Shown here piece by piece: positions 20,746 to 27,215 of a stretch of 64,000 nucleotides of DNA. Origin of the DNA: Leidyana gryllorum EB-2025a. Taxonomy: Eukaryota > Protista > Apicomplexa. The stretch is from the NCBI GenBank assembly GCA_048772705.1, contig JBLWGC010000104.1, forward strand, positions 620,001-684,000. Direction: 5' to 3'. Under the pieces are notes generated by a model. The model ran no database searches. It saw only the letters and a list, made by a program, of their open reading frames with translations, and was not told the DNA's origin. Both the position numbers and the translations under genes were made by a program. The first letter of the stretch is position 1. Every line of letters starts with the position of its first letter.

Positions 20746-23700
20746 TCATGAGGAAGACCGCAGATGGTCAAAGTTGAACCTACGCAGCTTGAACCGAGCG
20801 CCCACTACACCACGCATCAGAGCTGCCATCCGCTCACGTAACTCCTTTCCAGTCACTGACCGATGGGAGGCCACGAGAGGCAATAATTCATGCTTTCGCT
20901 TCGGATTGGTCACCACCAACGCCGTCGACCATGTCGCTGTCAGAGCATTCTTTGGCTGCAATCAAACAGAAACATTCGTGCACACCCGCACAGTGACGTG
21001 ACAAACGCCACTCTCAACTTACCAACAGAGGCCCATTCATCACCAGGAAGGGAGCGCTGGCTTGTCGGTGTGTGTTTGGTGGTGTCGTCGAACCCAACTC
21101 CGCGCTCCCAATTCCTCCAGCCGAGGGTGAGGGCGGCGACGCCACCGGAGACGCTCCCGCTGGCGCCTTTAGACGCCTCTCTGCTGTCGGGGAGGGGCTC
21201 TGTTTGAGCATTCGTGTCAGAGAAAAGGGGGATTTCGCTTGAGGCGTCGCAGGGCTCGCCACCTTGGAGGCAAATAAGTGCTGCGCCTTTTCGCCCCCGA
21301 GTTCTAACAACTCGCCTTCATGGCTGACGCATAGGAAATCAATTTCTAACTCGTAGTGGAGTGTCACTGCACAAAGAATCGCAAGTGGGAGAGAGACAAC
21401 AAAGTCGAACACGTGTGTGTCGTCGCTCACCCATTTCGGTGGTAAAGAAAGCTGGCAAGTCCGAGGGAATGTCAATGCCAATGGTGGCGGTCTGATGTTG
21501 GAGTACCGAATGGACCGTTCTTTGCAGCACTTCTCGCCCTTGCGAAACAAAAGTGCGCGGCTGATGGGGTTTCCCCTGTGGTCTCTGTCGGTCTTGAGAA
21601 TTAGCGTGGACGGGAGTGTGGGTGGCTGAGATCTCCGATGATAAGCCGATCATGCTGCTGAAAGAAGCACTTTCCCGGAGGGCGATGGATTTCCGCCCCT
21701 CGCGATCGCGGAAAGCCACCCACTGACGCGCTTCGGCCACACTGAGTGGTGGGGCGGTCAATGTTTCCACGGCCACCAACCGGGTCTGTATCTCGACCAG
21801 CGTAGCTCGGCTTTCGGAGAAGTCAAAGTTCAATTTTAGATATTCGCCACTGTTCACAATCAACTTTGTGGCGTGCGACCAACTTATTTCACGTGCTGGG
21901 CGCGTGTAGTCGCGAAGTTGAGGCCAAATGCATCTCTCATCTTCAGGGCTGAGCATTGAAGCACCTTCTATTGTCATTTCGCAAATGAAATGCCTCCCGA
22001 TCGACACTCGGATGGGGGCTGAGAGCGACGTTGACGTTTCAGCAGGAAGAGCTTACGGGAAGACACTCTGCCAGGCGGATCAGACACTTCGGCGGTACAT
22101 CGAAGGGCACTGGCCATTTCTGGTGTGGCTTCGATGTCAAAGTCGTCTTGTCGCCACCACAGAGCTCGAAGATTCTGCAGTTTCTGCAGATCGATTTGAG
22201 GATCGAAGGCATGAGGGAAGCCGGCGAATTCTATGTGTCGTCTCGTGCCATCTGGATTGCAGTCGTTAGCTTCCGTCTGACTGGTTGAACGGCCGAGTCC
22301 ACTCTGTGCCCGTTGCAGCCACGTCGTCGCGGCGACGACGGGTTCCAGAGGTTGTTCGACCAGATCCTCAAAACCTCCCAGACAGGTGCAGAATATTTGG
22401 TCTGCCTCGTTTGTCAATACCTTGTTGGCCTCGAGGATGTCTTCTTCCGACAAGAATGAGGCCACTAAAGCAGAACCGCAGCCCGAGTCTCCAAAATTCT
22501 GTTTCATGGAGGCAACAGGGCTACGGAGAAGGAGTGGGTGAACAAAGAACTCTGCAGCGCCTTACTCTCCGAGATTTATGCTGTGATCGGTCATGCAAGT
22601 CATCACCCATCTGATATAGTCATATCCCGCGTCCGCGCGGGCCAAATCGTCGGCAATCTCATTAGGGGAATGATGGTTGACAGCTCTGTAGATAGAAAGA
22701 GAGTGAGCGATTGATCTATCTATTGGAGGCGCCCACCTCAGCGGCAACCGCATTGGGGGCTCCTGTGAGTCAGTGACACCACCTCCGAGTAGTCGATGCC
22801 ACAACAGGAGAGAAGGGGAGTAATAAGTTGCTGGCAGGGGAGGGTAGACGGCTGGGGAGGGAATTAAGAATGAAGAGACGGGGTCAAAGGAAGCACTCTC
22901 CGTCAAGATCTGAGATGGGGGTACGAAGTTCTTCCTGAGAGAGGGGGAAGAGTCGAAAAACAGCCGGCCGGCGCGCCTGCTTCAAAGCTCACGCTGATGC
23001 AAAGACCCGCAACGGGTAGGAAGTTGTGAAGAGAGTGACATAACGGTCAACGCCCTCGTTCATTTCCCCATCGTACCGGATCAGGGAGACAGTCAATATG
23101 TACTCATATCTGTGAGAGATTCGACTCTTTGTTACCGGCCTCTGTTTGTCTCTCACGTGATGGTTGAGGAGGTGTAAGAGGGTGGGAGAAAGGAAGCGAT
23201 CGATCCATACAACGGGACTGACAATGTGCAGATTACGAAAGAGAGAGAGGTCAAAAGATTGGCACCCACTGCTACGATACGCGTCCGTTGACGGCTGCTT
23301 AGGCACCGGACGCAGACGAAACTCAATCGGGTCAGAAAGAGCAAAATGGCGACTTCGTTTCGTGTCATCTGTAAGCCGCCAGTATGTGTGACAAACAATT
23401 TAGACTCTCTCATCAACATACTGTCCACAGTAGGATCGAAAGGGGGTACGCAGAGGTGATCGAGCTCGCCTTCAATTCTTTGACGTAGACTCCGGGCGGG
23501 CGTTTCAGCCGCCTGTGGGGTTGTGTTACTGGGCTGTGAGGGGACGCTGTGTCGAGTAGCAGGCGCCGGAGACGACAATGCCCGTTCAGGCTCGGTATTC
23601 GGTGTCGTCGGCCGACTGTCCGAATCATTGGCGGCGTTCTCGGGACGTGTCACTCCGAGGCTCCGCGGTGAGCTCACACCCGAATGCGTCCCAGAAGGGG

Positions 23701-24010
23701 GGGACAAATCCGCAACACTGAGCCGCGATCCTGAGTGAGTCTTCGGTTTGCGCGTACGAGCCGCTCGCAGTCTTTGGGGGAGTGTGTGGTCTGTCACCAA
23801 GCCCGCATACCGCAGCCTCAAGAAATAAGCGGGCTCACGGGCTCCAGCAACTTCTGTCTCATCGGACCATAAATAGTTCTCAGAGATCAGCACTCGACTG
23901 TTGAATCGTCGACCAACTGATATGGGTCGACTCAGACATTCCCAATAAAACAGACGCGAAGGATCAGCTGCTAACTCGCTGCTTTCCAGGTTTCCCCCCT
24001 TTGTCCCCAT
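20746..24010 (-). CDS. Hypothetical multi-exon protein (may be more than one gene)
   Basis: Chain of minus-strand ORFs (23153-24046, 22562-22906, 21974-22507, 21339-22007, 20746-20961) with plausible GT-AG junctions. First in-frame ATG at 24010. No recognisable domain. Confidence 0.45.
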
Positions 24011-24248
24011 ACTCTCACACGCATCACCAAATATTTCGTCTCCCAACCCATTCTCTCATCTTCTCTTCCCTCTCGACCCTTTCTACTGTGTTGCCAACTG
24101 TCCATTGTGGTGCGATACAGACATTTTATCTGACTGCTTCATATTTTAGAGGGGGAGTGTACCAGAGAAGCCAAACGAAGTGAGCGTGCGTCTCTGACTG
24201 CCTCCACATTTCCCACCCTTGCCAACTGCTACCTATATTACCCGGACT

Positions 24249-25385
24249 ATGTACAAAGACGCTCTGCGACCCGCCTGGGCGGAGATCAACCTGTCCAACC
24301 TGGATTTCAACATCAAAAGTATTATAAAAAAGGCACATGGGGTGAAGGTGGCCGGTATCATTAAAGCCGACGGTTACGGCCACGGTGCGGTCGAGGTCGC
24401 GCGAGTCCTGCGGGACAACGGCATCACTTCCTTTGGCATTGCGACTCTGCAGGAAGCAATCGCCTTGCGTGACGCAGGTTTTCAGCAAGAAGAAATTATC
24501 ATGCTGGGTCTAACTCCCAGCATGTTCGCGTCTACGTTGGTGGAATACAACATCACGCCCGTAACCTGTTCACTGGCCAATGCCCAAGCTATCTCCGACG
24601 CTGCCGCCGCCTGCAATAAGGTAGTGGAGGGCTTCGTGGCCGTCGACTCGGGCATGGGCCGCATCGGGTATCTGGCTGGTGATGAGGAAGCGGTCAAGGA
24701 AGTTACGCAGATCGTACAGCTCAAAAACTTCCGGATCAAGGGACTTTTTTCCCACTTCGCCACCGCCGACGCAGCAGACAAAGCCTACGCGCACCATCAG
24801 GAAACTCTGTACCAAACTTTCTGCCAGGCCTTGGAACGTGCTGGCGTGAACGTCCCGCTGCGCACTTTCGCGAACAGTGCCGCCCTAATGGAAGTGGAAA
24901 CCGCACACTACGATATGATCCGTCCCGGTATCGTGCTATATGGCCTGTATCCGTCCCATGAAGTGGACCCGTCCCGACTGACTTTGAGACCGGTTATGTC
25001 GGTCAAAGCCAACATCGTACACCTCAAAAAGGTGGGCCCAGTTTTCTCTATAGGCTATGGACGGAAGTTCGTTTCTGAACGCGAAAGCCTTATCGCCACG
25101 CTGACCATAGGTTACGCAGACGGATACCCACGGGCCTATTCTCAGCACGCCAAAGTCATTGTCAATGGTCACTATGCACCAATCGCTGGCAATATCTGTA
25201 TGGATCAGTGCATGGTTGACGTCACCGATGTACCAGACGTCAAAGTGGGTGATGAGTGCATTATTATGGGCTCAGATGGCACCAACACTATTCTGGCGGA
25301 CGACATCGCCGACGCAACCGGCACTATCAACTACGAAATTGCATGCGCTTTTGGGCAACGCTTGCCCAAGGTCTACGTGAAATAA
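24249..25385 (+). CDS. alr: Alanine racemase, bacterial-type PLP fold III enzyme, intronless (378 aa)
   Basis: RPAWAEINL, PLP-lysine motif IIKADGYGHG, DSGMGRIG, SHFATAD, ANSAA, MIRPGIVLYG, catalytic Tyr in SIGYGRKF, IGYADGY, ICMDQ, TINYEI. ATG at 24249, TAA at 25385. Confidence 0.95.
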   Translation: MYKDALRPAWAEINLSNLDFNIKSIIKKAHGVKVAGIIKADGYGHGAVEVARVLRDNGITSFGIATLQEAIALRDAGFQQEEIIMLGLTPSMFASTLVEYNITPVTCSLANAQAISDAAAACNKVVEGFVAVDSGMGRIGYLAGDEEAVKEVTQIVQLKNFRIKGLFSHFATADAADKAYAHHQETLYQTFCQALERAGVNVPLRTFANSAALMEVETAHYDMIRPGIVLYGLYPSHEVDPSRLTLRPVMSVKANIVHLKKVGPVFSIGYGRKFVSERESLIATLTIGYADGYPRAYSQHAKVIVNGHYAPIAGNICMDQCMVDVTDVPDVKVGDECIIMGSDGTNTILADDIADATGTINYEIACAFGQRLPKVYVK

Positions 25386-26266
25386 GTATAATGCTAATCC
25401 TTTATCGCTGACGTATCGTACCATGACGTCCTCAGCATCTGGCACCTATTGAGGTATTCTGACGGCTTATATAATTCGGGAGAGGTACCCAGACGTTCTC
25501 TCAAATCACTTTTTTCCTGATTCCCTTTTTTCCTAAGCAATTAGAGGTACATAGAAGAGAGCCCCGACAGATGTCGGAATGGCTTCTTCAGTAAGAAACT
25601 TGCATCGTCAACTCCGTCATTAAGGCGGAATATCCCATCCTCAATGCGTCCGTCACTCACTTAGCAGTAACTCCGGTCGACAACACCCACAGCTAGTTGG
25701 GACCGAAACTTGGTCTGCCTAATCCCGACGCAACTCCCAGTGAACGTGAAGGGCAGGCAGATCGCATCCTTTGTCAGCGACAACTTGATCGAGTCTTTCC
25801 AGTCTAAGAAGAACGATACAGTAACCTAAGCAACGCGTTGCTTGACCACTGGTAGCGCGGTTGGTCGAAAGCCCAGTGCTGCAAAGCTTGCTTTCAGTAG
25901 TGCCACAGCCAGCTTTATTTAAAAGTCTCAAACGAATGAAGCGTTGTCTATTACCAAAGTCAGGGAGGTACAGTGCAGGAAGAACTGCTGGACTAACAGC
26001 CACCCGAGAGAGGGGTGGATGGGCATTGCACGTTGCAGCTGCTAACAGATCCGAATCAAAGTATCAATGACTGTTGGGAAAATGGATATAACGTTATTGT
26101 CGATGTCTCCTCCTTTTGGTTTGCTGGAAAGAAACATTGAAGAATAGAAACACTGTCAGTCCCAAAAAAATCTTTTCGACACAAACCTTAGGGGGCGTTA
26201 TCTTGGCTCACTGATAGCTCCACTCCTCTACTACTTGAACCTACTCTTACCTTCAACACTACTACA

Positions 26267-26519
26267 ATGCCATTGAATATTGCTGTAAGCCCCTGGGCTC
26301 CTCCCGTACATCTATTGCCACAGGGAGGAAAGAAGAAGCCGCTCAAGTCTGCTAAGAAAGAGACTAAGGAGCTCGACGAAATTGATAAGGCCGAATTGGC
26401 AAGACGTCGCACTGCTGAAAAGTGAGACTTTACCTCACATACATTTTACCGGGGAGATCGTTTCGAATTTCAGGGCCGAAGCAGAGGCCAGAGCAAAACT
26501 GCTCAAAGGCAAGAAGTGA
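26267..26519 (+). CDS. TMA7: Translation machinery-associated protein 7 (53 aa, 3 exons; absent from ORF track)
   Basis: Exons 26267-26284, 26324-26421 and 26474-26519 splice via GT-AG introns to MPLNIAGGKKKPLKSAKKETKELDEIDKAELARRRTAEKAEAEARAKLLKGKK*, with the TMA7 signature GGKKKPLK..KK..KELDE.D. Confidence 0.9.
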
Positions 26520-26684
26520 CATACTGTTTTCCATCGATTGTGAGATTTTGCCGATTCACAACATGTCACGCCTCGTCACCAACATTTAATCAAACTTAAA
26601 GTACCATTAAACAGCTTCTCAGTGCCAATCAACAAAGTAGACCGCCACGTGATCAAAACCTGGTTCTTTTATTTTCGGCATCAA

Positions 26685-27215
26685 ATGACCAAAAGAAAGG
26701 ATGCTTCGCGTGTAGGCGACTTGAAGGTCAAACTCTCTCCTGCGGAGCAAGAGAAGGCGAAAAGCAGAGCTGAACGATTCGGAATCGTCTCGGAAGACGT
26801 CAAGGCCAAACGACGAGCAGCTAAATTCGGCACCTTCCATCCTCAATTATATTCGGAAACTCTCAAGCGTCGCGCCGCTCGCTTTGCTCCGCCTACCACC
26901 ACCGCAATTGGGCCCGTCGACCACAATGTGACCGCCGAGGAACGAGAACGGAGGATTCGCCGTGCGGAACGCTTCGGAACCTCAAATGGTAAGAGTTCGG
27001 AGCATGTTCTTTCTGGAATCTTTCTCTTTGTAGCTGATTTGGAAGATGAAAAGAAGAAGCGCCGAGCCGAGCGATTCAATGCAGGCAATCAAGCCACATT
27101 GGAACAATTGAATAAACATCTGACTGAGGAACCAGATAAACCTGTGGATCCTGCGACCCAAGCTGTAGCACGTGCAGCTGCGGACCCGCCCCTTGATCAC
27201 CAGGATGTCTGCTGA
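26685..27215 (+). CDS. Tho1/SARNP/MOS11-like protein (repeated R-A-E-R-F-G motifs)
   Basis: Five repeats: SRAERFG, RRAAKFG, RRAARFA, RRAERFG, RRAERFN. Probable in-frame 45-nt intron 26989-27033. Confidence 0.75.
   Translation: MTKRKDASRVGDLKVKLSPAEQEKAKSRAERFGIVSEDVKAKRRAAKFGTFHPQLYSETLKRRAARFAPPTTTAIGPVDHNVTAEERERRIRRAERFGTSNGKSSEHVLSGIFLFVADLEDEKKKRRAERFNAGNQATLEQLNKHLTEEPDKPVDPATQAVARAAADPPLDHQDVC

Follow-up and report, generated by a model that had tools for sequence, protein, structure and literature searches.

A clostridial-type alanine racemase gene, probably acquired by horizontal transfer, between spliced genes of a gregarine-like apicomplexan

The closest described relatives of the gene examined here (alr) are the bacterial alanine racemases (Alr; TIGR00492; PLP fold type III), with which its product has in common the full length, the catalytic pair, the PLP contacts and the inner entryway. 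It differs from these in lying on a eukaryotic chromosome and in lacking a Shine-Dalgarno sequence; moreover, because no D-Ala-D-Ala ligase was found in the host, it cannot serve peptidoglycan synthesis. The transfer of racemase genes into eukaryotes is already well documented, and the present gene overturns nothing. Fourteen transfer events involving Ala_racemase_N have been described, five of them in SAR, including Cryptosporidium, and Adineta vaga is also among the recipients (PMC5169069). For S. pombe and other eukaryotes with a bacterial racemase gene, catabolism of D-alanine via L-alanine has been proposed; transferred Alr is reported to be used to catabolise D-alanine in S. pombe and M. 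maripaludis (PMC3960212), while euglenozoans have been proposed to use Alr on cell-wall D-alanine (PMC7052976). The present gene differs from transfers of the S. pombe type in its host group, its clostridial donor, a probable operon relic and a predicted coupling to metabolism via alanine aminotransferase (ALT); of these, the donor, placed to family level, and the probable relic are distinctive.

Genes annotated as 'alanine racemase' in apicomplexans often encode the single-domain YggS/PLPBP protein. Both Plasmodium and Toxoplasma have been stated to possess an 'alanine racemase' (PMC7909243). Trypanosoma cruzi, a protist parasite likewise associated with the insect gut, has a proline racemase and a putative alanine racemase (PMC12153322), and so resembles the present host in having both types; however, the two lineages are unrelated, the Alr described here has no secretion signal, and the pairing is one of genome content only. 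Two further groups of racemases have the same fold as the present protein. The serine racemase VanT has an Asn696 and a membrane domain that are absent here, while Lyr and Bar, of the broad-specificity group, are also without Lys129; nonetheless, Lyr, Bar and BsrV carry Thr, Ala and Pro at the Tyr354 position, where these residues, like Asn696 of VanT, open the pocket and the present protein retains tyrosine. No paper linking gregarines with alanine racemase was found in the library searched.

Structure, setting and origin of the gene

The window, a stretch of 64,000 nucleotides, corresponds to C104:620001-684000 in assembly G000 (15.5 Mb, 237 contigs), within a contig that is at least 684 kb long. 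The host is an alveolate, as shown by 16 alveolin-family (IMCp) matches in the assembly, and is probably a gregarine. Only a single copy of alr was present. Its coordinates (Table 1) and strand were correct in the preliminary description, as was its extent; the frame comprises 378 codons plus a stop, remaining open throughout without internal stops or introns. Its identification as a bacterial Alr was upheld by a profile search (TIGR00492: 358.2 bits against a cut-off of 168, E = 4e-107, profile positions 1-368 of 369), and all of the motifs previously quoted were located: KADGYGHG (residue 39), FVAVDSGM (129), MIRPG (223), GYG with Tyr270, and GNICMDQ (314). The closest solved structures were clostridial-type alanine racemases, 4y2w and 4lus. 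Residues 1-9 were identical in 7 of the best 120 bacterial matches; therefore, the ATG at 24249 corresponds to the bacterial start and a targeting extension is absent, in agreement with the earlier statement that the protein has no signal or transit peptide.

Table 1. Coordinates of alr, its neighbours and selected codons in the window
Feature	Position	Strand	Basis
Upstream host gene, without Pfam match, divergent from alr, spliced	23153..24046	-	Relative's contigs reach 23998
Candidate GT..AG intron of 40 nt in the 5' leader of alr, with branch-like motif	24110..24149	+	Sequence inspection
alr CDS, 378 aa, intronless, intact, Anaerovoracaceae type	24249..25385	+	ORF and profile match
Lys39, PLP Schiff-base lysine, predicted catalytic base	24363..24365	+	Conserved without exception in 120 close and 144 distant homologues
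Ala131 at the usual carbamylated Lys129 position	24639..24641	+	Ala in 120/120 closest, 32/144 distant
Tyr270, predicted second catalytic base (Tyr265' equivalent)	25056..25058	+	Alignment
Asn315 at the entryway Arg309' position (GNICMD)	25191..25193	+	Asn in 118/120 closest, 28/144 distant
Tyr362, alanine-specificity tyrosine (Tyr354 equivalent), kept	25332..25334	+	Alignment
Probable GNAT N-acetyltransferase pseudogene relic	25686..25993	+	Frameshift-aware and HMM scores
Host TMA7, first intact gene 3' of alr	26267..26519	+	PF09072; covered by relative's contig
Host Tho1/MOS11-like gene, intron 26989-27033 confirmed	26622..27215	+	PF18592; spliced joint

In addition to TMA7 and the Tho1/MOS11-like gene, Ku70 was found downstream of alr. 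Contigs from one public run covered both flanks, leaving alr and the gap behind it uncovered; these contigs mismatched the window throughout and so belong to a related organism. They skipped GT..AG introns at 22686-22736, approximately 23218-23269 and 26989-27033, which substantiated the intron-bearing eukaryotic flanks that had been claimed on both sides of alr. The lack of cover over alr may reflect absence of the gene from the relative, low or silent expression, or filtering. The run itself (X1) was filed as 'DNA?', although since its contigs skip introns, it is probably an RNA run of a related gregarine. A search for synteny in other gregarines based on Tho1 returned no usable orthologue.

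The purine-rich Shine-Dalgarno sequence seen in the three bacterial homologues inspected was absent 5' of alr in the window. A scan for bacterial promoters and terminators gave matches at chance level only, and no convincing target-site or terminal repeats were found flanking the insert. Besides the candidate intron listed in Table 1, the leader contained, at 24180-24204, a second strong donor-like GTGAG and a repeat of that intron's branch-like motif (direct repeat D1), with no acceptor before the ATG.

The best 120 matches to the protein showed 66-73% amino acid identity, and those with names came from Anaerovoracaceae and related Clostridia, the nearest named clusters being Sinanaerobacter, Anaerovorax and Aminipila. 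All genomic contexts fetched for these matches were bacterial, and there was no eukaryotic orthologue among the matches found. A metagenome search for closer relatives gave nothing above 41% with the query used; some of its hits, in records labelled as human-gut metagenome, were bacterial alr loci and were set aside. Phylogenetic analysis with IQ-TREE nested alr in an Anaerovoracaceae-type clade with support of 100/100, and together with the best matches this narrowed the Clostridia-like source suggested previously to Anaerovoracaceae. The tree comprised bacterial Alr only, and vertical descent is excluded solely because alr nests tightly among bacteria. Its nearest neighbour was the bacterial protein P0014 (94/85), within a subgroup with long branches. 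An alternative placement with the Sinanaerobacter/Anaerovorax subclade, which is linked to an N-acetyltransferase gene (GNAT; see below), was not rejected (AU p = 0.35); given this and the long branches, the donor is fixed to a family-level clade only. Near-identity to a bacterium in DNA sequence was checked and did not emerge: nucleotide identity to the best bacteria was 66-68% (73% at most for amino acids), and four-fold degenerate sites were 26-32% alike, which is near saturation, so that none of the bacteria sampled is the immediate source. A codon-usage test of amelioration was uninformative, the value for alr being 0.035 (host genes -0.004 to 0.050) and GC-rich donors fitting equally well.

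With this nesting, and with spliced host genes on both sides, alr is most plausibly a horizontally transferred clostridial gene, and this interpretation, which had been put forward for a eukaryote resembling a gut parasite, is favoured over contamination. It is highly improbable that the gene is an assembly chimera or a contaminant from a co-sequenced gut bacterium. Such an origin would suit an intronless gene, given that gut parasites are sequenced along with bacteria, and would suit its GC3s of 0.62, slightly above the host range of 0.47-0.58. However, the GC content of alr was otherwise similar to that of the host, both joins were clean and lay between host genes, and no bacterium exceeded 73% identity; furthermore, Ddl was absent assembly-wide, and the locus offers a single intact bacterial gene, stripped of its Shine-Dalgarno sequence, with a neighbour that is decayed rather than intact.

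A probable acetyltransferase relic behind alr

In the most similar bacteria, a GNAT of 154 residues follows alr on the same strand at a distance of about 30-130 bases; this order was found in loci L003, L004, L010, L089, L090 and L097-L100, while the downstream neighbour of P0014 is an amidohydrolase and not a GNAT. In the window, alr and TMA7 are separated by a gap of approximately 880 bp. When compared with this gap, the L004 GNAT aligned on the same strand with 25715-25993 (95 aligned residues at 25% identity; E = 3e-5 for the gap), a core in which there are 4 in-frame stops within approximately 93 codons. A frameshifted piece at 25686-25739 lay upstream of this alignment in the order and spacing expected, and a possible 5' fragment was identified at 25391-25442. 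The GNAT of L107, an unrelated member of the family, aligned in the same register (E = 1e-5), and among 2075 bacterial ORFs compared with the gap, the top match was GNAT.

Scoring against groups of GNAT sequences gave a range of results. An HMM of 19 sequences placed the gap first among 870 tile-frames, with a score of only 5.8 bits. The mean frameshift-aware score with 19 GNATs, which are non-independent, was 39.0, compared with 29.7 ± 1.8 for 440 host tiles and 29.0 ± 1.6 for 700 shuffles; this was reached by none of the tiles or shuffles, although the best host tile came close, at 38.5. Where long insertions were allowed, the score rose to 44.9, against 32.5 ± 2.5. A profile of six GNAT sequences produced a p of only about 0.02 on the gap. 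At the DNA level, the relic had no match, either with nhmmer or in a search of 401 Anaerovoracaceae-family genomes. On balance, these comparisons suggest that the relic is probably real.

Other candidate relics were rejected. There was no match for a relic of the short-chain dehydrogenase gene found upstream in donors or of the amidohydrolase of P0014. The second-ranked match to the gap, a MogA-like ORF of L055, was due to chance and in a different frame; single scores of around 57 arise by chance. A 16-bp palindrome at 25828-25843, inside the probable relic, bore no sign of function.

If the relic is real, then a two-gene piece was integrated long ago, which is inexplicable by a contaminating read, and the open frame of alr would signal selection, since 378 codons with the stop density of the relic should contain approximately 16 stops. 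An old transfer, in which two genes arrived and only alr was kept, is favoured. The decayed neighbour would then be an unusually direct record of the trimming of transferred DNA, with one gene retained and the next lost. There is little probability that alr, although integrated, is silent or nearly neutral, and a passenger heading to loss. The relative's contigs skip the gene and three invariant columns are altered, as might be anticipated for such a passenger, but its codons have stayed open beside a relic interrupted by stops, and its changes cluster in variable columns: among 145 near-invariant columns, alr departs from the consensus in 3, against 89 of 137 columns that are less than 85% conserved.

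Active-site residues and substrate range

Residue equivalences were mapped by motif and through alignments to solved relatives, and the roles of active-site and entryway residues were taken from previous work (PMC3146814, PMC3485190). In addition to the residues in Table 1, the PLP and substrate contacts Tyr43, Arg138, His169, Arg225 and Cys317-Met318-Asp319 were kept. The inner entryway, as defined in PMC3146814, was complete (Tyr270, Tyr289, Tyr362 and Ala173), and the middle entryway retained Arg295, Asp174 and Ile360, with Asn315 replacing the usual arginine. Ala131 takes the place of the carbamylated lysine, or of the asparagine plus chloride that may stand in for it; the carbamylated lysine and the entryway arginine are typical of Alr but do not define it. 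By the features tested, the predicted protein is an alanine racemase, and the best explanation is a cytosolic PLP-dependent homodimer that would operate a two-base mechanism with Lys39 and Tyr270.

The same two replacements had led the preliminary description to propose that substrate range could differ, and here it was not sustained. Ala131 was present in all 120 and Asn315 in 118 of the 120 closest bacterial proteins, so that a host-specific change to the active site was ruled out; judged from these alignments, both residues are inherited from the donor clade. Of the 30 best-matching Anaerovoracaceae-family genomes, 18 had one Alr match, and 16 of those 18 combined Ala131 with Asn315, on counts from draft genomes, where a further copy could have gone undetected. 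The sole Alr of a walled bacterium should be obliged to make D-alanine.

It is improbable, therefore, that the enzyme is broader or different in substrate, accepting serine, lysine or other amino acids, when Tyr362, Tyr270, Tyr289 and Ala173 are all retained and 16 of the 18 genomes with a single Alr match, all from bacteria that require D-alanine, have this type. The tyrosine equivalent to Tyr362, Tyr354, is known to restrict Alr to alanine (PMC4542195, PMC3485190). Both the asparagine of VanT and that of Lyr/Bar, which substitutes there for the carbamate, were absent, the latter being replaced by Ile139 after the PLP arginine, Arg138. Profiles of other racemases scored below their cut-offs: 332 (cut-off 460) and 208 (cut-off 900) for the VanT profiles NF033131 and NF033132, 215.6 (cut-off 600) for the catabolic DadX and 34.3 (cut-off 480) for ornithine racemase Orr. 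What speaks for a wider range is that the carbamylated lysine is also missing from the broad racemases Lyr and Bar (PMC3485190), that one entryway arginine is replaced, that some donor genomes contain a second Alr, and that no characterised member of the Ala131/Asn315 subfamily was found.

An Alr subfamily that has neither the carbamylated lysine nor any residue known to substitute for it was widespread in Anaerovoracaceae (loci L116-L145), often as the sole Alr. Among these loci, L135 has Asn at the specificity tyrosine, as in VanT, and L130 has Ser in place of the PLP arginine. How Arg138 is held without a carbamate is a matter for the enzymology of this bacterial subfamily, rather than of the host. 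The present gene is amenable to complementation and assay, and a common type of Alr, devoid of the carbamylated lysine, would thereby be characterised for the first time.

D-alanine metabolism and other racemases of the host

The draft assembly was searched exon by exon, without joined gene models, and on that basis contained no D-Ala-D-Ala ligase and no class IV/D-amino-acid transaminase (PF01063), controls being detected in both cases; for D-amino-acid oxidase, there were only weak DAO-family matches, the two best of which were fumarate-reductase-like and GMC-like flavoproteins, plus three short matches. With no ligase, transaminase or oxidase found, the racemase is the only visible link of D-alanine to metabolism. 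Two ALT-like genes were identified (L147 and L148, on G000:C205 and C33), where a review that did not consider the present genome limited ALT to coccidians among apicomplexans (PMC7909243). A D-aminoacyl-tRNA deacylase was present. A search for D-proline reductase was blank, but its controls likewise gave no signal and the result is uninformative. In several eugregarine groups, on evidence from genomes other than the present one, mitochondria are reduced and anaerobic and pyruvate is used for substrate-level ATP (PMC8051059).

Under the best explanation, a gut-dwelling, gregarine-like apicomplexan would have acquired a short piece of Anaerovoracaceae DNA, probably alr with the downstream GNAT. 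The GNAT would have decayed, while alr would have lost its ribosome-binding site and come under host control, with purifying selection persisting. D-alanine from bacterial walls in the host gut would be taken up by the parasite and converted by the racemase to L-alanine, which would enter protein or, via the alanine aminotransferases, pyruvate. The outcome would be an oxygen-independent salvage and detoxification of D-alanine in a cell where D-amino-acid oxidase was not detected. Scavenging of D-alanine, a role raised at the outset, is plausible in view of the enzymes present and not found; that no D-alanine transporter was identified counts against it. We infer that alr is expressed, that its product has alanine racemase activity, that D-alanine is taken up and that the flux is from D to L, this direction not being readable from sequence because the racemase is reversible with an equilibrium near 1. 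Retention of the donated gene for D-to-L salvage, considered as a whole, has a slightly better than even chance of being correct. A gregarine would thereby gain access to a nutrient of bacterial origin in the gut, where oxygen is low and a D-amino-acid oxidase, being oxygen-dependent, would work poorly.

D-alanine is known as an osmolyte of invertebrates. The same transfer and the same enzyme could sustain a net flux from L to D, providing D-alanine as an osmolyte, as fermentation overflow or as an effector on the host or gut bacteria; this is rather unlikely, but merits consideration. Besides the reversibility of Alr, it is consistent with the two ALT-like genes, which could supply L-alanine from pyruvate, with the failure to find an enzyme consuming D-alanine, which would accumulate or be exported, and with a proline racemase having both catalytic cysteine motifs, as in T. 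cruzi (PMC12153322). Conversely, the Alr protein lacks a signal peptide, neither a ligase nor another user of D-alanine was found, and the characterised precedent in microbial eukaryotes is catabolic.

Two further racemase genes were found. The first instance concerned an Alr-family gene at L002:1387-2550 (-) (G000:C211:70070-71065), where the frame was intact and 28% identical to the window alr, but the PLP lysine is replaced by Ser and the catalytic tyrosine by Phe. It most resembled non-clostridial (proteobacterial-type) bacterial Alr clusters, which indicates a separate acquisition and not a duplicate of the window alr. The second instance was the proline racemase at L115:1489-2523 (-) (G000:C173:134213-135211), which is intronless and scored 439 bits against PRK13969 (cut-off 556); it was only 46% identical to Anaerovoracaceae-family proteins, and so does not indicate a donor shared with alr. 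These genes invite a bolder scenario, in which alr was acquired twice, the dead proteobacterial-type copy being repurposed and the clostridial copy active, and in which the carbamate-free Alr, with the proline racemase, would set D-alanine levels in the gut. This is distinctly unlikely; if true, it would describe an apicomplexan with a borrowed D-amino-acid system acting on gut bacteria or on its host.

Two minor observations were made during these searches. PF01063 had zero matches in the whole assembly, which means that no branched-chain aminotransferase was detected either. Finally, the fumarate-reductase-like flavoprotein at L005:1303-3165 (+) (G000:C194) is a soluble type encoded by a single exon, with a predicted N-terminal membrane anchor, and would fit anaerobic redox balance.
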